DNA of 64,000 nucleotides from Selaginella moellendorffii (taxonomy: Eukaryota > Plantae > Lycopodiophyta). The stretch is from the NCBI RefSeq assembly GCF_000143415.4, contig NW_003314261.1, positions 868,001 through 932,000 on the forward strand, read 5' to 3'. Position 1 is the stretch's first letter. Each line of letters begins with the position of its first letter. Shown piece after piece: positions 12,121-24,030 of this stretch. The position numbers and the translations under genes were made by a program. The notes under the pieces were generated by a model, which was not told where the DNA came from, ran no database searches, and worked only from the letters and a program-made list of their open reading frames with translations.

Positions 12121-12398
12121 CCCTTCTCCGGCGCTCAATGTTCTCTCTCCAGGAGAGGCGGGATTAAACTTAGGTACCGGATCAGATCTCTGGGAGCTCC
12201 TAGGGTTCCTGGGTTTCTGTCACACGGCGGATGAGCTTACTGGCTATGGCGCCGATCGATATCAGGCAAGTCGAGGCAGGGATTTTGATGCGCTACGGGC
12301 TCGCGATGGCCGCATTGAGCTGAGATCACAGCCTGTGTGATCGAGGTGAAAATTCTCTGGGGCGTGGAGAATCCAGGCACTCGTCATTGCATGGGAGA

Positions 12399-15300
12399 AT
12401 GTCGCTTTTCCGCCGATTTTTCTACAGGAGGCCCCCCGATGGGCTCCTGGAGATATCCGAGAGGGTTTTTGGTAAGCACTCGCTCGCCCTCGATCCATTC
12501 CAATCTCCATTCCCAGCGCATTGATCCATTCTTTTGTGAAATCCAGTCTTTGACTCGTGCTTCTCCACGGACGTCTTCGAGGAGGAGACTTACAAGCTCT
12601 ACTTGCGCCAGATCGCGATGCAAATCCACGAGCAGTTCCCCGATTCGTCCTTCCTCGTCTTTAACTTCCGGGAGGGCGAGAGGAAGAGCCAGCTGACAGA
12701 GATGTTATCGCAATACGATATGACGGTGATGGACTATCCACGCCAGTACGAGGGCTGCCCGATTCTTCCCATGGAGATGATCCATCACTTCCTGCGATCC
12801 AGCGATAGTTGGCTCTCGCTCGAGGGGCAGCAAAACATCGTCCTGATGCACTGCGAGAGGGGGGGATGGCCGCTGCTGGCGTTCATTCTCGCCAGCTTTC
12901 TCATCTACAGGAAGATGTACACGGGCGAATTCAAGACGCTTGATATGCTCCACCGGGAGGCTCCCAAGGGATTGATGCAGCTGCTCACTCCGCTCAATCC
13001 GATGCCATCGCAGCTGAGATATCTCCAGTACGTTGCTAGAAGGAACAACTCTCCAGAGTGGCCTCCCCCGGATCGCTCGCTCAGCCTCGACTGCCTCATT
13101 CTCAGAGTGGTGCCAGCTTTCGATACCGAGGATGGATGCCGGCCCCTCGTCCGGATTTATGGAAGAGATCCCCGATCGAAAGCAGGGAACAGGACGACGA
13201 GGATGCTCTTTGCCTTGGGAAAGAAGAGCAAGTCTGTCCGGCATTATCGACCGGTAAGGTGGTGAGCTTGTTTTCTTTCTCTTGCTTTGATCAGTAACGC
13301 TCTTGTGTGTTCCAGACAGATTGTGATGTGATGAAGATCGATGTACAGTGTGCCGTGCAAGGGGACGTGGTTCTCGAGTGCATTCACTTGGACTTGGAGT
13401 CGGACCGGGAGGAGATGATGTTCCGGGTCATGTTTAACACGGCGTTCATCCGCTCCAACATCCTGATGCTCAACCGGGACGACATTGACATACTCTGGAA
13501 CGGGAAGGAGCGCTTCTCCAAGGACTTCCGAGCAGAGGTAAGGAAGCAAAGCTGAACCAATTTTGGCAAAATCAATCTTTTCCTTTTAGGTGCTTTTTGG
13601 CGAGACGGATGGATTTTCGTCCCCTGTGGCGCCTGTGCCGTCGCTGATGGAAGAGAAAGGTGGCTTGCCGATGGAAGCTTTTGCCAAGGTCCAGGAGCTC
13701 TTCAGTAGCGGGGACTGGTTAGACGGTGGCGGAGACGCGGCATTGAAGTTCCTCCAGCAGCTGACCACGGTTGGCAATGGATTTGAGGACAGGAGACTTC
13801 CGATGGATCGAGCAGCACTAGCGGCAGTGGACGACGAGTGGACACTTATTTCCAGCAGCACTACCTCCTCCACCATCGCCACCGCGACACCCCTAACCGA
13901 CGATCAAAACGGGACAAGTCCAACGTCATCGTCTAACCCTAGCTTCGCACCAGGTACTCCTTCGCCACCTCCACCTCCGCCTCCTCCACCACCTCCGAGG
14001 TTGGCTATTTCGCGTTCTCCACCTCCTGCTCCACCACCACCACCACCACCACCAGTAGTTTCTGTTGCCGGTCGTCCCCCTCCTCCGCCTCCTCCACCAC
14101 CTCCGTTCAAGCTTCCAAGTTCTACTGCAAAGCTGCCACCGCCACCGCCGCCTCCGCCTCCTCCGCCGCTGCCTCGAGGGAATTCAACTGCCCCACCGCC
14201 GCCGCCTCCGCCACCGTTGCCTAGAGGGAATTCAGCTGCACCACCTCCTCCGCCTCCTCCACCGCCACGTGGCAATACCGCTGCGCCACCTCCACCGCCA
14301 CCACCTCTTCCACAAGCTGCGAGGCCTCTAGCTTCATCAAGCTCACCACCGCCGCCGCCACCGCCGCCGCTGCCTCCACCGGGAATGCGAGGCACTCCTC
14401 TGCCTCCACCTCCGCCTTTTAAAGGACCGCCTCCACCTCCGCCGCCTCCTCCCGGATCAGCAGCTCCGCCGCCACCGCCGCCTCCTCTCGGTGTGAAGTC
14501 ACCATTGCCTGGTGTACCACCTCCTCCGCCACCTGCATTGGGGAGAGGACGAGGTAGTAGTCCTTTGACACCTTCGCCTCCTGGTGGTCGAGGCCGAGGA
14601 CAGGTTGCTGGTGCTTCGGGTCTGGCATCTGCTACGCCGAAGAAGACCTCTCTGAAGCCATACCACTGGGTAAAGGTTACACGGGCTATGCAGGGCAGTC
14701 TATGGGCGGAGAGTCAGAAGCAGGAAGAGCAGTCAAGGTGTGTCTTGTGGTCTTTTTCTTTTGTTACATGTGCTCACAATTTCTTTTTGTTGCGTGATAG
14801 GCAACCTGAATTTGACATGAACGAGCTAGAGAGCCTCTTCTCGGCCGCTGTTCCGAATGCTGCTGCGGGTGGTGACAGAGCGGGTGGTCGTCGTGCATCT
14901 CTAGTTCCCAAGCAGGAAAAAGTGCTCCTGGTAAGCTGCCTTTTGTAGTCGAAGCGGAGGCCTCACTATTGTTTTATTCAGATTGAACATAGACGGGCGT
15001 ACAATTGCGAGATAATGCTGACAAAAGTGAAGATGCCACTGCCAGAAGTTGTTGTAAGTTGCTCTCTACATTATGCAATGTGGTTTTTACTTGAGCACTC
15101 AGAAAGCAATACTAGCGTTGGATGGGGCAGTACTGGATGTAGATCAGGTTGATAATCTGATCAAGTTTTGTCCAACAAAGGAGGAGATGGAAACGCTCAA
15201 GGTTTTATTTCCAGATATGATCTTGCCATCTAACTTACACGCTGGTGGTTTTGCAGAACTACACGGGCGATAAAGAATGCCTGGGCAAATGTGAGCAGGT

Positions 15301-16596
15301 TTGTTCCGCTTTGTCCGAAACAGTATCGTTTACTAGACAATATGTTTGCTTTTGCAGTATTTCCTGGAGATGATGAAAGTTCCTCGGGTAGAGTCCAAAT
15401 TGAGGGTTTTTTCTTTTAAACTTCAGTTCACGTCGCAGGTTTGGTGAAAATTATTTTGTCTACCCTTTCAAACGTTGGTATCAGGTGTCAGATTTACGAG
15501 AAAATCTGGTAGTAGTCAATGAAGCTTCAGCAGAGGTAATTTCGCACTCTTCTTGTATGTTGCCTGAAGCCGGATTCTTGCAGGTGAAAGAGTCTCCTAA
15601 GCTTAAAAGAGTGATGCAAACGGTTCTGTCCCTGGGAAATGCGTTAAACCAAGGAACTGCTAGAGGTAAGCAGAGTGCCCGGGAGCTTGAGCTAAGTAAC
15701 AAGTGTGGCTGTTGTTCCAGGGGCGGCGATTGGATTCAGACTCGATAGTCTACTTAAGCTGACAGAAACTCGAGCTCGTAATTCTAGAACTACGTTATTA
15801 CATTATCTGTGTAAAGTAAGTTAGGTGCAACTGTTTTGGCTTGGCTGACACGTGACACTGGTGGCAGATTGTATCCGAGAAAATGCCCGAAATACTTGAT
15901 TTCGACAAGGAATTGCCTCACCTTGAGGCAGCCACCAAGGTTCTTATATTTCATACTCCAGTATTTGTGTCTCGGTTTTCTGACCTGTGTTACAGATTCA
16001 ATTGAAGGCTCTTGCAGAAGAAATGCAAGCCGTAAGCAAGGGCCTGGAAAAGGTTGAGCAGGAATTGACAGCGTCTGAAAACGATGGAGCCGTCTCTGAT
16101 GGGTTTCGGAAGGTGATGTCTGCCTGCTTTGCGTGCATTGTCCTAATGTTTTCCATGGACGCACAGAGCTTGAAGAGTTTCCTTGATACAGCGGAGGCGG
16201 AGGTGAGAACACTGGCGTCTTTGTACTCTGAAGTGGTAAGAGATGTTAAGTTTGTATGAATGGCTCGTTGAAAGCATTGTCACTTTGCAGGGCCACAATG
16301 CCGATTCCTTGGCGCGCTACTTCAATGAAGATCCCGCTCGCTGTCCATTTGAGCAAGGTACTTAACCATTTGGTCTATATGCACTTGATTTTACAAACGT
16401 CTGTTGGATTTGGTTCGCAGCGGTGTCGATCATTTTTAATTTCATCGTGATGTTCAAGCGTGCATTGGAAGAGAACAGCAAGCTAGCAGAGATGGAAAGG
16501 AAGAAGGCTGAGAAGGAGGCCGACAAAGACAAGGTTCTCCCGCTGAGAAGAGAGCTGGATGGGCTACTGTCGCCCCGGCGAAGCAGGATAGCGTGA
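12399..16596 (+). CDS. Class II formin (PTEN-like/C2, FH1, FH2), multi-exon
   Basis: Exon 1 encodes MSLFRRFFYRRPPDGLLEISERVF. The PTEN-like domain has HCERGGW and PSQLRYLQY; C2 has FRVMFNTAFIRSNIL; FH1 is a long polyproline tract; FH2 has LKPYHWVKVTRAMQGSLW, RRAYNCEIMLTK and LSLGNALNQGTARG. TGA at 16594-16596. Confidence 0.96.
13960..14535 (+). repeat. FH1 polyproline (CCN)n low-complexity tract
   Basis: More than 10 poly-Pro runs, including three PPPPP(L)PRGN(S/T) units. Confidence 0.9.
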
Positions 16597-16753
16597 CCAT
16601 TTAAGTCGGAGATTTTGAAAGGGGGTCTTTGTTTGTACATTCTTCCGGATAGATTATTGACACGAAGAAGATTTTTGAAGAAAAGAAATTCAATGATACG
16701 TTTCCAAGGCCCTACTAAGAACGTTAGGGTTTTCATGCAGAAGGGTTTAGAGC

Positions 16754-18307: not shown

Positions 18308-18405
18308 TTCTTGCTAGATTTCATTGAGTTGAATTCACTAGTTTTTCTTGGTAGATTTCATTGAGTTGGATTTGCTCTTGCACGGCACACTGTACATCGA
18401 TCTTC

Positions 18406-18589
18406 TGTTATGAAATGGGGATACCCAGCCTTGTGAGCGCAGCAGCGCTCCATGCTGGGTCCACCTTTATTGCGGAAGACGGATCAAGAACAGAATGTGT
18501 CGGGCGTGATCACCTACAGAACCTAAACGGATGTGTCCCTTCTGCTGACGTGGCATCCCAGCTTGAGATTGCGGCTTAAGTCCTCAACA
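18406..18589 (-). repeat. Copia 3' LTR
   Basis: Reads identical to 22245-22428 and adjoins the PPT. Confidence 0.95.
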
Positions 18590-21500
18590 CTCCCACTCGA
18601 GCTAAGCTGGGATCAGCCTCGAGCAACTGTACACCAAGAGCTTGGACATGCTTGGAGAATGCAGCTAGGGGCAGAGCTTTTGTGAAAACATCTGCCACCT
18701 GATCTCCCGTCGCACAATACACTAGCTCCATTGTCTCCATGGCAACCTGCTCACGAATAAAATGAAACTGTACCTGTATGTGCTTGGTACGTCCGTGATA
18801 CTTCGGGTTCTTCGTCAAGGCAATTGCTCCCTGATTATCACAGAAGATAATCGTTGGAGTCTTCTGTGGATAATATACTCCACTCAATAGTTGCCTCAGC
18901 CAAACACACTCTTTGGCTGCTAAGGTAGTGGCCACGTACTCAGCTTCGGTGCTTGATAGTGCAATTGTTGGCTGCCTTTTACTGCACCAAGTAACTGCTC
19001 CACTACCAAGGCTGAACATATAGCCTGAAGTGGACTTCCTCTTGTCAACTTCACCAGCCCAATCAGCATCTAAGTATCCAACGAGCTGAATACCCCTAGG
19101 CTGCTGCTTGTAAACAAGACCATAGTTGGCAGTCCCCTTCAAGTATCTGAAAATCCGCTTTACTGCTAACCAGTGCTGGTAGCCAGGATTTTCCAAGTGC
19201 TGTGAAACTGCTCCCACTGCATAGGCTATGTCTGGCCTCGTACACACCATCAGGTACACTAAGCTTCCCACCATCTGCCTATATGGGATCCGCTTCATAT
19301 GTTCCTCCATAGGTGTGGTTGCTGGGTTCAGCTCACTGAGTTGAAACCTCTGAAGCACGTCCAGAATGTACTTCTTCTGAGACATCTGAATCACTCCCTT
19401 CCTCCTGTCTCGGAAGATCTGAATGCCAAGGCAGTAGTGAAGAGGTCCCATGTCAACCATCTTGAATCGGCACCCCAAATCCAGCTTCAACTGCTTCATG
19501 GTAGCACCTTCACTTGAGAAAAGGATGCAGTCATCCACATAGAGAGCTATCATGGCTCGAAATTCTCCCACTCGCTTCAAGTACACGTTACTGTCAGCTG
19601 AAGTCTTGGAGAACCCCAAACCCAAGAGATAAGCGTCCATTTTCTCGTACCAGGCCCTGGGTGCTTGTTTAAGGCCATATAAAGCCTTCTTCAACCGGCA
19701 CACTAAATGTTCCTTCCCTGGAACAACAAAGCCCTCTGGTTGCGAGATAAAGACCTCCTCATGTAGATCTCCATTCAGAAAAGCTGTGGTGACGTCCATC
19801 TGCTCGACTTCCAAGTTTTCTTGAGCAGCAATGTTCAGCAACATCCTGATCGATGCATGTTTCACCACTGGTGAAAATGTTTCTGCAAAGTCCACTCCTT
19901 CTACTTGAGAAAATCCTCGAGCTACAAATCTGGCCTTGTAACGATCAATAGAGCCATCTGGCTTATACTTGATCCGGAACAGCCACTTTGTACTCACGAT
20001 TCTTCTGCCTGTAGGAAGCTCCACCAAGTCCCACGTTTCATTTTCCATCAAAGATTGATACTCTAGGAAAATTGCATGCTGCCACTCTGCTGCATTTGGA
20101 CCAGCCAAGGCTTCTTGCAGGGTCTTGGGTACTGTGGCTTCTGCTTGGTGAAAGAGTGCTAGAAAGTCGAGTTCCATGTCCTCAGAAGGAACTTCCTCCT
20201 GCTGCTGGGACGGTGAGCTTGCAGCATAATAAAATGCTGCTGAGGTTACTGGAGGTGGCTCAGATGCACTGCGATCACGAGCTGCTCTGGCTTCAACTCT
20301 AGAAGCCTCAAGAGCCTGCTTTAATGCCACATCCTCTCTGTACTGCTGTCCTTGTTCAGTCAAGACACGAACACGACTGGATCTACGAGGTGCTGCTGCT
20401 TCCTGCTGCTGGCTGCTTTCCTGCTGCTGGCTGCTCTCACTAGAGCTGCCTTCCTCGAAATTGAGAGAAGGTGAGAGATCTGAGACACTCCTTGGAAGAG
20501 TTCGGCCTGCCCTGGGAGGAACTTGAGCCACGACTCCACCTCCACCTGTAGCTGCTCCGCCTGAGTGTGCACGCTGCCGTCGAGAGGCATCTTCCTCCTC
20601 GCTGTCGCTATCCTCAATTAGGGTTTGCTTACCACTAATGAGTAACGGCATCTGCTGCGAGGTGGTTGCTAGCTGGTTCTTGGTGTTGTACATCTTAGAC
20701 TCGTCGAAGATGACATTCCTGCTCGTGATCACCTTCCTGGTGTTCAGGTTGAAGAGCTTGTAACCCTTCATCTTGCTTGCATAGCCAAGGAGAATGCACT
20801 TCTCACTTCTACTGTCCAGCTTCTTGGGCTCGTCCTTGAGTGCATAAGCTACACACCCAAAGATCCTGAGATGGCTCACGTCTGGTGCCTTCCCATACCA
20901 CACCTCATAAGGTGTTCGTCCCTTGACAGCAGAAGTAATCAGCCTATTCCTCAAGTAGGCTGCTGTCTTCACAGCATCACACCAAAAGAAATTTGGCATG
21001 CCTGCATCTTGCAAGATCGCTCGTGCCATCTCCACAAGAGTTCGGTTCATCCTCTCAGCCACGCCATTTTGCTCAGGAGTTGAAGGCACTGAAAGTTGCC
21101 GCTTAATTCCAGCTTGCTCACAGAACTCCTTAAAGGCGTTAGAGGTGAACTCTCCACCACCATCACTTCTCAGCATCTTGATTTTTCTGCTTGTCTCAAG
21201 CTCCGCTTGCAGCTTGTAGACCTTGAAAGCTTCAAAGGCCTCTGACTTGTGCAGCAAAAACTTCACTGCTACCATCCTTGAAAAATCGTCGATGAATGTG
21301 ACAAAGTATTTCTTCTTTGTCCTTGACATGGTCTGCATTGGGCCACATAGATCAGAGTGTACCAGCTCCAGGACATCCTTCCCTCTTTCACTTACACCTG
21401 AGCGAAATGGAAGGCGATGCTGCTTACTGAGGACACAAGGCTCACAAAATCCAGCTGATGATGGAGCAATGTTCAGTCCTCGGACAAGTTGTCCTCTTGC

Positions 21501-21640
21501 TAGCTGCTGTACTCTCTTGATGGAAGAGTGGCCTAATCTCCTGTGCCAAGTGTCTAGTGTAGCTGGTTTGTCTTCCACGCTGCTACTGAGCATTAACCTC
21601 TCAGGATACACCACTTCAGCATTCAGGCAATAGAGCCCGT
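18576..21640 (-). CDS. pol: Copia pol (integrase, RT, RNase H), open frame, protease absent
   Basis: WHRRLGH...CEPC, HSDLCGP, RSDGGGEF, QNGVAERMNR, YKARFVARGF, LYVDD, DADWAG, CDNQGA and ADVFTK. The first in-frame ATG is at 21593. Confidence 0.92.
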
Positions 21641-21659
21641 GTGAAGAACGATCCTGAAG

Positions 21660-22230
21660 ATGGGGAGTGTGCGCGACGCCATAGAGATCTTTGATGGCAA
21701 GGATTTCAGCGGATGGCAGGAGCAACTCGAGTACTACTTTATGCAGAAGGAGCTGTGGCCAGTGGTCGACGGTTCCTGGACGCGCCCTCCCACAACGGAC
21801 AAGGCTGACCGCAAAGAGTGGGATGGAAAGAACATCAAGGCCTTGGGCATTCTAGGCAGAGGCCTGGGCAAGGTGTTCAGTTGCCATCTCGACATCACGA
21901 AGACTGCGCACGAGAACTGGGAAAACCTGAAAGCAACCCTCGGAAAGGAGAATGAGACCACATTGCTGGACTTAGAGACAGAACTCGGTTCTGTAAGACA
22001 GCATGAAGGTGAGTCCATTCAAGCCTTTGTTGGAAGGTTGAGGAAGGTAGCAAGCCAGATCGCACGCATCACGAAGACACCAGTGAGTGAACCGAAGCTC
22101 AAGTCGGTTGTCATCAAAGGCGTGGCGAAGTATCTTCTGACAACAGCGACTACTCACTCGTCAAAGAAATTTGACGAAATGGTCCTTCAGTTGAAGTCAG
22201 CAGAGAACTTGATGGAGACCAATGAGGGAG
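21660..22230 (+). CDS. gag: Copia gag (N-terminal/capsid part), antisense to its own element
   Basis: MGSVRDAIEIFDGKDFSGWQEQLEYYFMQKELWPVVDG...EWDGKNIKALGIL...TAHENWENLK...QHEGESIQAFVGRL is a Copia gag signature. No zinc knuckle. The frame stays open through the PBS and LTR to 22418. Confidence 0.9.
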
Positions 22231-22244
22231 TAGCTCTGATACCA

Positions 22245-22428
22245 TGTTATGAAATGGGGATACCCAGCCTTGTGAGCGCAGCAGCGCTCCATGCTGGGTC
22301 CACCTTTATTGCGGAAGACGGATCAAGAACAGAATGTGTCGGGCGTGATCACCTACAGAACCTAAACGGATGTGTCCCTTCTGCTGACGTGGCATCCCAG
22401 CTTGAGATTGCGGCTTAAGTCCTCAACA
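22245..22428 (-). repeat. Copia 5' LTR
   Basis: Adjoins the tRNA-iMet PBS and is followed by TSD TCTTC. Confidence 0.95.
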
Positions 22429-23579
22429 TCTTCATCACATCACAATCTGTCTGGAACACACAAGAGCGTTACTGACCAAAGCAAGAGAAAGAAAACAAGC
22501 TCACCACCTTACCGGTCGATAATGCCGGACATCTTTCCCAAGGCAAAAAGCATCCTCGTCGTCCTGTTCCCTGCTTTCAATTGGGGATCTCTTCCATAAA
22601 TGCGGCCCCTCGTCCGGATCGAAAGCTGGCACCACTTTGAGAATGAGGCAGTCGAGGCTGAGCGAGCGATCTGGGAGTGGCCACTCTGGAGTGTTGTTCC
22701 TTCTAGCAACGTACTAGAGATATCTCAGCTGCGATGGCATCGGATTGAGTGGAGTGAGCAGCTGCATGGGAGCCTCCCGGTGGAGCATATCAAGTGTCTT
22801 GAATTCGCCCGTGTACATCTTCCTGTAGATGAGAAAGCTGGTGAGAATGAACGCCAGCAGCGGCCATCCCCCCCTCTTGCAGTGCATCAGGACGATGTTT
22901 TGCTGCCCCTCGAGTGAGAGCCAACTATCGCTGGATTGCAGGAAGTGATGGATCATCTCCATGGGAAGAATTGGATGTTGCTGAACATTGCTGCTCAAGA
23001 AAACTTGGAAGTCGAGCAGATGGACATCACCACAGCTTTTCTGAATGGAGATCTACATGAGGAGGTCTTTATCTCGCAACCAGAGGGCTTTGTTGTTCCA
23101 GGGAAGGAACATTTAGTGTGCAGATAATTCATCTTTGAAAAATTACTGGATCCTTGTAGCGGCGTGGATAATCCATCACTGTCATATCGTAGTGCGATAA
23201 CATCTCTGTCAGCTGGCTCTTCCTCTCACCCTCCGGGAAGTTAAAGACGAGGAAGGACGAATCGGGGAACTGCTCGTGGATTTGCATCGCGATCTGGCGC
23301 AAGTAGTGCTTGTAAGTCTCCTCCTCGAAGATGTCCGCGGAGAAACACGAGTCAAAGACTGGATTCACAAAAGAATGGGTGAATGTGCTGGGAATGGAGA
23401 TTGGAATGTATGAGGAGAGATTGGAATGTAACACATTTGGACTAAAAGCTTCAACTTGAAAGGTTGAGAGTAGGAGTGGAACTCCCAACAAAGAGCTCGA
23501 GGAACAAGCACGAAACAAGCAATAAGCGAGGCTCCAAAAAGGGACCCAAAAGGACCAACACATGACACGTGGAAGAGTG

Positions 23580-24030
23580 CAAGATGGACCCGAGTTGAAG
23601 TCCGAGATGGAGTCCGAGATAGACCGAAGTGGAGTCCAATATGGACCCAGATGGAGTCCGAGATGGACCCGAGGTGGAGTCCGATATGGAGTCTGATATG
23701 GACTGAGATGGAGTCCGAGATGGACCTGAGATGGAGTCTGAGATGGAGTTCGAGATGGACCCGAGGTGGAGTACGAGATGGAGTCTGATATGGACCGAGA
23801 TGGAGTCCGAGATGGACCCGAGGTGGAGTCCGAGAAGGACCCGAGATAGAGTCCGAAGTCGAGACCGAGACTGAGACTGAGCCTGACACTGAGACTGAGA
23901 CCGGGACTGAGATCAAGACTGGGACCAAGATTGAGATCGAGACCAAGGCCGAGGCCGAGACCGAGCCCAAGCCCGAGTCCGAGTCCGAGTCTGAGTCCGA
24001 GTCCGAGTCCGAGTCCGAGTTCAAGTCTGA
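23580..24030 (+). repeat. Minisatellite in LTR-B: GATGGACCCGA/GATGGAGTCCGA units, then (GAGACC)n/(GAGTCC)n
   Basis: Directly visible; homologous arrays at ~35025-35410 and ~38180-38620. Confidence 0.9.

Follow-up and report, generated by a model that had tools for sequence, protein, structure and literature searches.

A very young Ty1/Copia insertion in Selaginella moellendorffii with an inverted leader-gag block abutting the PBS

How does a retrotransposon copy young enough to have identical LTRs come to carry the N-terminal half of its gag on the opposite strand? The question is raised by positions 18406-22428 of a 64,000-nt stretch of Selaginella moellendorffii (Lycopodiophyta) DNA (GCF_000143415.4, contig NW_003314261.1, 868,001-932,000, forward strand); this whole stretch is referred to below as the window, and positions are counted from its first letter. 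The initial annotation of the locus had proposed either a rearrangement after insertion or a non-autonomous subfamily mobilised in trans. Its anatomical description holds, and the first of its two interpretations keeps part of the probability, but it did not consider a third origin, namely, during the reverse transcription that made the copy, which is the reading that we prefer.

A very young insertion with a paralogous empty site

The element proves to be a real and very recent Ty1/Copia insertion, oriented on the minus strand, with the order (in minus sense) LTR-PBS-antisense(leader + gag 1-191)-IN-RT-RH-PPT-LTR. Its terminal and minus-strand features, the target site duplication and the empty site are:

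13333..13337, plus strand: paralogous empty site with a single GAAGA, in an intact formin gene of the same window
18401..18405, no strand: left copy of the TSD, TCTTC, 5 bp (single copy in the paralogue)
18406..18589, minus strand: 3' LTR (element sense), 184 bp, 100% identical to 22245-22428
18579..21638, minus strand: open pol frame with gag_pre-integrase, integrase (HHCC, DD35E), SH3, RT (YVDD) and RNase H; stop inside the LTR
18590..18598, minus strand: PPT GAGTGGGAG (reverse complement), adjoining the 3' LTR
22233..22244, minus strand: PBS TGGTATCAGAGC, tRNA-iMet, 12 nt (reverse complement of the window letters), with junction R at its 3' boundary
22245..22428, minus strand: 5' LTR (element sense), 184 bp, 100% identical to 18406-18589
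22429..22433, no strand: right copy of the TSD, TCTTC, 5 bp (single copy in the paralogue)

The LTRs are direct terminal repeats with the ends TG...CA (TGTT...AACA). Because the paralogue has one GAAGA where the element locus has one on each side, 13333-13337 is the true empty site, and the flanks of the element match it exactly. The 5-bp target duplication is therefore proven by a paralogous empty site within the window, and the identical LTRs and perfect TSD of the initial annotation stand in full. With 1.3 × 10−8 per site per year, a commonly assumed plant rate, the lack of differences between the 184-bp LTRs sets an upper bound on the age of the element of roughly 0.2-0.6 Myr.

The PBS, PPT and pol all lie on the minus strand, as annotated. 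The PBS is identical to the published plant Copia tRNA-Met PBS, and the PPT resembles the Copia PPTs in the same paper (PMC3852365). A minus-strand ORF (21725..18579, 1049 aa) contains the Pfam domains gag_pre-integrs, rve, SH3_retrovirus and RVT_2, in this order, and can be aligned with a complete Copia polyprotein reference over residues 441-1347, RNase H included, up to the C-terminus; in the N-terminal alignment, the Gly-Leu-Tyr codons at 21630-21638 mark the start of the pol homology. The position of integrase ahead of RT and RNase H is the Ty1/Copia pol order. Given that the integrase, RT and RNase H motifs are all intact, the template was a recently functional element.

The inverted block, the missing region and the search for relatives

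Next to the PBS lies a block of 596 bp on the plus strand, which consists of a short leader and gag codons 1-191:

21637..21659, plus strand: inverted leader, 23 nt, preceding the gag ATG (putative native sequence after the PBS)
21660..22232, plus strand: inverted gag, codons 1-191 (Pfam, BLASTP and multiple alignment)

The gag frame reads through the PBS into the LTR as a plus-strand ORF of 252 aa (21660..22418), which matches Retrotran_gag_2 (Pfam, E = 1.6 × 10−11), with a weak sub-threshold match to DUF4219, and aligns in BLASTP to residues 25-167 of the same Copia polyprotein reference as pol. In the multiple alignment, the gag homology extends up to the PBS. The measured block thus bears out the earlier estimate of a leader and ~590 bp of gag on the plus strand, as well as the placement of the breakpoint directly against the PBS. 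Absent are ~0.6 kb that would include the C-terminus of gag, CCHC and protease: in all six frames, the element is devoid of a CCHC knuckle and of a D(S/T)G protease motif, in agreement with the annotated loss of both, and no protease-region match was found anywhere in the 64-kb window. The arrangement of an autonomous element, in which gag with its nucleic-acid-binding C-terminus and the protease lie upstream on the integrase strand, is therefore absent. The copy most likely cannot replicate by itself, and is a single dead copy rather than a new system. The initial annotation had also stressed that the gag and IN-RT-RH frames are free of stops; both frames are indeed open, but this is expected in so young a copy and hence is neither a separate signal nor a mark of selection.

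Two explanations would place the anomaly outside the biology of a single insertion. Misassembly of near-identical family copies, or a cloning artefact, could have disguised a normal gag-protease region, and young repeats are prone to misassembly; however, the window contains zero Ns, the junctions are clean and microhomology-bounded, both frames are open, the flanks match the paralogous empty site exactly, and a breakpoint at the PBS boundary combined with a simultaneous 0.6-kb deletion is not expected from an assembler, which makes an artefact very improbable. The CpG density of gag and the LTRs is twice that of pol, and a difference in CpG content between gag and pol would fit a nested origin, whereby a second copy inserted into the first in the opposite orientation and later deletions removed the LTRs of this second copy and most of the 5' regions of both elements. 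Such a history would require at least three events within the lifetime of LTRs with zero divergence, and neither internal LTR sequence nor an internal TSD has left any trace, so that we consider it scarcely credible.

Gag, the LTR and the two junctions have no further copy elsewhere in the 64-kb window. Word searches with pol (1049 aa) and with RT-RNase H (490 aa), in collections that do not include the host genome, yielded nothing above 53% identity (the best protein identity among 5.8 billion sequences was 52-53%), and the word search with the gag protein (252 aa) yielded no match at all. There was likewise no match in the exact-protein look-up, in the gag-based scans of metagenome and viral contigs, or for the leader/gag DNA pattern in viral contigs. 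Two metagenome matches to a 25-mer spanning the LTR end and PBS were rejected as unrelated AT-rich elements that have only the 13-nt LTR tip plus PBS in common with the query. A contig of a distant relative that was checked for the PBS-to-ATG distance possibly has a tandem structure.

These searches bear on the second interpretation of the initial annotation, under which the element is a copy of an already rearranged master, that is, a member of a non-autonomous subfamily whose antisense-gag RNA is packaged and reverse-transcribed by the proteins of an autonomous relative. The intact LTRs, PBS and PPT of a young copy with a clean TSD are compatible with such mobilisation, Copia derivatives with a defective gag and a dependence on a partner are known, BARE-2 among them, and an RT fragment beside the element (described below) differs from it by 1 base, which allows for a second near-identical source. 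The lack of a second copy in the window and in the searched collections, which exclude the host genome, is weak evidence to the contrary. Ty1 has its cis signals for packaging and for extended pairing with the tRNA just downstream of the PBS, in the region that is inverted here; the inversion probably harms packaging and priming, and therefore counts against mobilisation in trans. Furthermore, an intact full IN-RT-RH frame would not be expected in an established parasite lineage. BARE-2 resembles the element in that the cis elements and pol are retained and its own gag is unusable; families of this type are, however, defined by many copies with a shared defect, whereas here one copy is known, with gag inverted rather than mutated. 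Overall, we regard mobilisation in trans as improbable.

Junctions of the inverted block and its possible origin

On both sides, the inverted block is bordered by the last five PBS bases, in mutually inverted copies (AGAGC...GCTCT). At the gag end, junction R coincides with the 3' edge of the 12-nt PBS; the other junction is:

21632..21638, no strand: junction L, AGAGCCC, reverse complement of the pol Gly-Leu codons and identical to the final 5 nt of the PBS followed by the usual 13th C

The presence of these pentamers at the two junctions, with the gag end of the block directly against the 12-nt PBS, is a new observation. AGAGC and GCTCT combined occur only 11 times in the element, and the junction-L site is among the best few PBS-like sites of 7264 internal positions (chance of ~2-3%). 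Simple arithmetic gives a probability of ~0.1% that a breakpoint placed at random in the ~4.2 kb of internal sequence would lie no more than 3 nt from the 3' edge of the PBS. AGAGCCC is followed by the 23-nt leader and then by the gag start codon, which is what a block that begins exactly at the native end of the PBS would show; accordingly, the native sequence after the PBS would read CCGTGTGAAG...ATG, judging from the leader at 21637..21659. At junction R, the codons complementary to the PBS, Ala-Leu, fall on an A-[LFM] motif found in 14 of the 16 reference gags, which weakly suggests that GCTCT microhomology was involved at this junction too. The A-L motif is ~10 residues nearer to the preceding helix than in the references, and the match may be due to chance. 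The microhomology argument is partly post hoc, and the native PBS-leader junction and GCTCT in the native gag are presumed.

These junctions can be related to known features of tRNA-primed reverse transcription. In the tRNA-iMet-primed elements Ty1 and Ty3, the first plus-strand strong-stop DNA terminates after 12 nt of tRNA, and Ty3 particles accumulate dead-end strong-stop DNAs (PMC5371799). Plant and fungal tRNA-iMet carries a bulky 2'-O-phosphoribosyl at position 64, which is the 13th base from the 3' end (PMC11301382). In the reading that we prefer, with a probability of about 0.5, two template switches guided by microhomology to the last five PBS bases (AGAGC/GCTCT) occurred while the copy was being made, most likely inside the virus-like particle. 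Plus-strand strong-stop DNA would have ended after the 12 tRNA-templated bases (...TGGTATCAGAGC-3') and mis-annealed to GCUCU in the gag region of the still-uncopied genomic RNA. Gag and the short leader would then have been copied backwards until synthesis stalled five bases into the tRNA-occupied PBS, and the new GCTCT-3' end would have found its complement, AGAGC, in the minus-strand DNA where the Gly-Leu-Tyr codons precede integrase, from where synthesis could proceed to the end. Normal insertion by the particle integrase would account for the 5-bp TSD and the identical LTRs. The product would have been dead on arrival: the C-terminus of gag, CCHC and protease are missing, and the RNA of the element does not allow translation of the gag that is left. 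This order of events, and reverse transcriptase rather than a host polymerase as the enzyme that switched templates, are what we infer from the junctions. Template switching with opposite polarity has rarely been documented for integrated LTR elements, which speaks against this origin, as does the unequal CpG density to the extent that it could mean a different source for gag.

A host-driven origin is brought into focus by the surroundings of the element. In a formin copy that flanks it, which is a pseudogene fragment with one stop and one frameshift, an exon that is uninterrupted in the paralogous formin contains a 175-nt insertion, 0.55 kb outside the element, with a 5-nt microhomology (GGATG):

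22973..23121, plus strand: inverted copy of the element RT (19698-19846), 149 nt, 1 mismatch, an insertion in the formin pseudogene fragment beside the element
23122..23149, plus strand: orphan filler beside the RT fragment, 28 nt, with no other copy in the window

This insertion is the result of past host templated repair at the locus, and the same kind of repair could have yielded the structure of the element after insertion, which likewise counts against an origin in reverse transcription. In such a scenario, host repair or replication with template switching (MMEJ, MMBIR, or SDSA with filler) acted on a normal integrated Copia: a break in the gag-protease region was followed by the loss of ~1.2 kb and re-synthesis of leader-gag in inverted orientation via 5-nt microhomologies. 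The identical LTRs and TSD fit equally well with this scenario, the filler is a clear templated event at the same locus, and the occurrence within 0.75 kb of two inverted patches bounded by microhomology suggests that one repair episode made both. It leaves unexplained, however, why one breakpoint coincides with the 3' boundary of the 12-nt PBS and the other makes use of the same pentamer from the PBS; the 596-nt inverted fill-in requires a second gag template, from the sister chromatid or another element; and the PBS, LTR, TSD and flank between the two patches are undisturbed. We therefore consider post-insertion repair unlikely, albeit the strongest competitor to template switching during reverse transcription. 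Two other uses of the RT fragment were rejected. Its insertion did not create a new intron of a working formin, given that the paralogue exon is uninterrupted and the copy beside the element is a pseudogene fragment; and recombination between the 149-nt inverted arms did not cause the inversion, since RT is contiguous across 19846/19847 and the predicted inversion differs.

Comparison with known systems and antisense gag RNA

The element resembles compact autonomous plant Ty1/Copia elements (for example, Jatropha Jc8/Jc9, Tnt1, EVADE), with short TG...CA LTRs, a 5-bp TSD, the PBS TGGTATCAGAGC, a GAGGGGGAG-type PPT, the order IN-RT-RH and a pol frame that extends into the 3' LTR; it differs from them in that the N-terminal half of gag lies on the other strand and the gag C-terminus, CCHC and protease are lacking. 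The dead-end strong-stop DNA of Ty1/Ty3 ends after 12 tRNA-templated bases, and the antisense gag starts right after the 12-nt PBS (PMC5371799); the yeast DNA is, however, described as a displaced by-product and not as a primer for aberrant synthesis, a role that it would have to assume here. Internal segments of Copia cDNA are also inverted in autointegration circles of Ty1 and of Arabidopsis SISYPHUS (PMC7197481), but these are circular suicide forms in which LTR ends are joined to an internal target. The autointegration route is excluded because the LTRs of the element have the same orientation, form its ends and adjoin host DNA with a TSD, which is the wrong topology.

Among non-LTR elements, a 5'-side inversion plus deletion that arises in reverse transcription is seen in LINE-1. 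In twin priming, a second 3' end primes on the RNA and produces a 5' inversion with a deletion and junction microhomology. LINE-1 is target-primed on chromosomal DNA, whereas the second primer here would be strong-stop DNA within the particle. Copies of L1 with a 5' inversion form a recognised class (PMC2912911). If the reverse-transcription reading is true, the element would be their LTR-element counterpart, a natural integrated footprint of a Ty1/Ty3-style plus-strand pathway with a 12-nt strong-stop end in a plant Copia, and would offer a testable one-step origin for antisense or fold-back retrotransposon loci. By itself, it amounts to one dead copy within a pseudogene fragment, and no influence on the host or other elements has been demonstrated.

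As the initial annotation had anticipated, an LTR-driven transcript would, from the structure, contain 596 nt of antisense leader and gag. Silencing or parasitism of the autonomous family by this antisense gag is conjecture. The broader idea that mispriming by the 12-nt strong-stop DNA is a recurrent route to 5'-inverted Copia in this spikemoss, and that transcripts of this copy, or of a subfamily derived from it, provide antisense gag that forms dsRNA together with the RT fragment and silences the autonomous family, strikes us as highly doubtful. In a silencer of the Mu killer type, sense and antisense copies are present in one transcript and siRNAs are produced. Gag is present only once in the element, which consequently has no internal hairpin. 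A 149-bp inverted repeat does exist between the RT of the element (19698-19846) and the flanking fragment (22973-23121).

Structure of the rearranged element and its integration site

The Copia insertion is a known kind of element in a new structural form. The initial annotation had described this element correctly in every detail that could be checked (LTRs, target-site duplication, strand of the PBS and polypurine tract, and reading frames). The whole inserted unit comprises 4023 bp, and it and its flanks contain the following features.

Features of the element and of the interrupted formin fragment
18406-18589 and 22245-22428: direct LTRs, 184 nt each, 100% identical, with TGTT...AACA ends
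18401-18405 and 22429-22433: target-site duplication TCTTC, on both sides of the element
22233-22244: PBS, reverse complement TGGTATCAGAGC, directly inside the right LTR
18590-18598: polypurine tract, reverse complement GAGTGGGAG, inside the left LTR, typical of Copia
21725..18579, minus strand: pol frame, 1049 open codons, with gag_pre-integrs, rve, SH3_retrovirus and RVT_2 matches
21660..22418, plus strand: gag frame, 252 codons, with a Retrotran_gag_2 match (E = 1.6 × 10−11)
23415-23152, 22974-22429 and 18405-18377, minus strand: formin fragment, 90-93% identical to the intact formin gene

The sequence TGGTATCAGAGC is the tRNA-Met-complementary PBS of plant Copia families (PMC3852365). Because the PBS and the polypurine tract both read on the reverse complement, the element is placed on the minus strand. 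The minus-strand pol frame aligns with residues 441-1347 of the complete Copia polyprotein P0002 (1349 aa), including the RNase H part, at 44% identity, and contains the HHCC, DD35E and YVDD motifs. Gag lies on the opposite strand, as had been claimed: the plus-strand frame with the Retrotran_gag_2 match aligns with P0002 residues 25-167 and also has a weak, sub-threshold DUF4219 match, whereas the integrase and RVT_2 matches are all in the minus-strand frame. In two JGI metagenome contigs, AT-rich LTR elements (L002:384-408 and L003:4550-4574) have the last 13 LTR bases and the PBS identical to those of this element and are otherwise unrelated to it; the shared end is a convergent or conserved LTR terminus beside a tRNA-Met PBS.

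An intact class-II-formin-like gene is encoded on the plus strand of the same window (~12.3-16.6 kb; ~12300-16600), with PTEN_C2, proline-rich FH1 and FH2 regions. The Copia is hosted by an inverted partial duplicate of this gene (~870 bp), located 5-10 kb away on the minus strand. In the intact copy, the sequence ...GATGTGATGAAGATCGATGTACAG... contains a single GAAGA (13333-13337). The corresponding formin stretch is interrupted by the Copia, which has a GAAGA on either side, and the flanks show no other break in collinearity. This paralogous site serves as well as an allelic empty site would, and the comparison shows integrase-type insertion of the entire unit. The duplicate contains a premature stop and a frameshift, so that the insertion is in a pseudogene fragment, with no obvious cost to the host. 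Just past the end of the formin homology (18377), two 28-nt direct repeats, 93% identical and 37 nt apart, occupy 18308-18372, directly downstream of the stop codon that ends a plus-strand ORF of 517 aa lacking Pfam matches. On the other side, a degenerate array of 12-nt tandem units, GAGATGGAGTCC-like (23567-23880), is contained in a 365-codon minus-strand ORF, likewise with no Pfam match.

Missing coding capacity, expected transcript and age

Pol homology starts only at the Gly-Leu-Tyr codons 21630-21638, shortly upstream of the WHxRLGH box (25 reference polyproteins), and gag homology reaches the PBS, passing through the helix ...LKSAENLMETNE (16 references). Reference residues ~215-414, that is, the gag C-terminus, the CCHC knuckle where present, and the aspartic protease with its beta-barrel, have no counterpart in the element, so that ~0.6 kb is deleted and the native element would be ~4.6 kb long. 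The absence of the zinc knuckle and protease noted in the initial annotation was borne out by both searches: the C-x2-C-x4-H-x4-C and D(S/T)G motifs were absent from all six frames of the element, and tblastn with six full polyproteins found the missing segment nowhere in the 64-kb window.

From the structure alone, any LTR-driven transcript is predicted to carry the leader and gag in antisense, over 596 nt. Since the element's own RNA cannot give Gag, there is no protease, and pol would have to be initiated after a leader of ~0.7 kb, we consider this copy dead. The gag and IN-RT-RH frames are indeed free of stops, as had been noted, over 252 and 1049 codons, respectively; about 5% of substitutions create a stop, and the open frames are a sign of youth only. 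Zero differences between the LTRs over 184 bp bound the age at roughly 0.2-0.6 Myr under the commonly assumed plant rate of 1.3 × 10−8 per site per year.

PBS pentamers at the junctions and a proposed aberrant strand transfer

In element sense, the order from the 5' end is LTR, TGGTATCAGAGC, TACTCCCTCATTGG... (antisense gag) ...CATCTTCAGGATCGTTCTTCACACGG, GCTCTATTGCCTGAAT... (pol). At junction R, antisense gag starts directly after the 12th PBS base. At junction L (21632-21638), the pol side opens with GCTCT. The PBS ends in the reverse complement of this pentamer, AGAGC, and thus the inverted block is bounded by inverted pentamers. On the plus strand, the block reads AGAGC, then C, a 23-nt stretch and the gag ATG; given the usual plant Copia PBS, TGGTATCAGAGCC (PMC3852365), this is the arrangement expected of a native PBS with a short leader between it and gag. 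The element contains 11 occurrences of AGAGC or GCTCT. Of 7264 internal positions on both strands, ~6 are PBS-like (at least 8/12 matches, with at least 5 contiguous at the 3' end); the junction-L site is among these and ranks first once the 13th C is counted. By post hoc estimates, a PBS-like site would fall within the ~15-nt breakpoint interval by chance with a probability of ~2-3%, and a random breakpoint would lie no more than 3 nt from the PBS 3' edge ~0.1% of the time. In the gag frame, the PBS complement encodes Ala-Leu, and A-[LFM] is found at the aligned column in 14 of the 16 reference gags, a weak hint that native gag may have carried GCTCT at junction R; the spacing falls ~10 residues short of that in the reference gags, so that the match may be a coincidence.

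Aberrant strand transfer most probably gave rise to the element, as a one-off event. In Ty1/Ty3, which are primed by tRNA-iMet, the first plus-strand strong-stop DNA ends once 12 nt of the tRNA have been copied and is a displaced dead end, and such DNAs reach high levels in Ty3 particles (PMC5371799). In plants and fungi, position 64 of tRNA-iMet carries a bulky 2'-O-phosphoribosyl group (PMC11301382); this is the 13th base from the tRNA 3' end and presumably the stop. Given this stop and a strong-stop end after 12 tRNA-templated nt, a free single strand ...TGGTATCAGAGC-3' is expected in Copia particles. Its 3' end would pair with GCUCU in the gag region of a still-uncopied genomic RNA, and extension would produce antisense gag and antisense leader straight after the 12-nt PBS. 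On meeting the tRNA-occupied PBS of that RNA, the growing strand would stall a few bases in, and the resulting GCTCT-3' end could pair with its complement, AGAGC, at the Gly-Leu-Tyr codons of pol in the minus-strand DNA. Mutual extension, as in normal second strand transfer, would then complete a linear double-stranded cDNA, with both LTRs full-length and the internal order as observed, to be inserted in the normal way by integrase of the same particle. The identical LTRs, the clean target-site duplication, the 12-nt PBS junction, the reuse of the pentamer, the short leader beside pol and the intact pol frame are all accounted for by this one scenario. It resembles the twin priming behind 5'-inverted LINE-1 copies, although the machinery is different. 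The element would matter mainly as a natural footprint of the mechanism and a possible seed of antisense RNA, rather than as a new system. Autointegration, which can invert internal parts of Copia cDNA (PMC7197481), was excluded: it yields circles, and its topology is wrong for this element.

Possible alternatives: host repair, subfamily inheritance and assembly artefact

Host repair after insertion could also have rebuilt the gag region, and this rival is genuinely supported. At 0.55 kb outside the element, the formin fragment carries a 175-nt insertion (22978-23152) at a point where the exon of the intact paralogue runs on unbroken. The insertion consists of an inverted 147-149-nt copy of the element's RT (19698-19846) joined to 28 nt of orphan filler, and one of its junctions has the 5-nt microhomology GGATG. 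The copy has one CpG-type mismatch (V to I) and forms, with the element's RT, an inverted repeat of 149 bp whose arms are separated by 3.1 kb. This insertion resembles a double-strand break patched with templated filler DNA or captured cDNA, and shows that inverted, microhomology-bounded patches do get made at this locus; repair of this kind, however, leaves the use of the PBS terminus at both junctions unexplained.

In Ty1, packaging and extended primer pairing depend on the region just downstream of the PBS. The inversion lies there and would probably damage both functions, and we therefore lowered our estimate for an inherited subfamily of rearranged elements. In a collection of 5.8 billion proteins that does not include the host genome, the best identities were 52-53% for pol and RT-RNase H, and gag had no match. 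An assembly artefact is unlikely, since the junctions are clean, the frames open and the empty-site match exact.

CpG density changes stepwise at the pol/gag junction (21606-22428 vs. 18590-21600). The observed/expected ratio is ~0.7 in the gag block and LTRs vs. 0.39 in pol, where no 573-nt window exceeds 0.54; the contrast may be normal for the 5' region in this family, or may hint at a different gag source.
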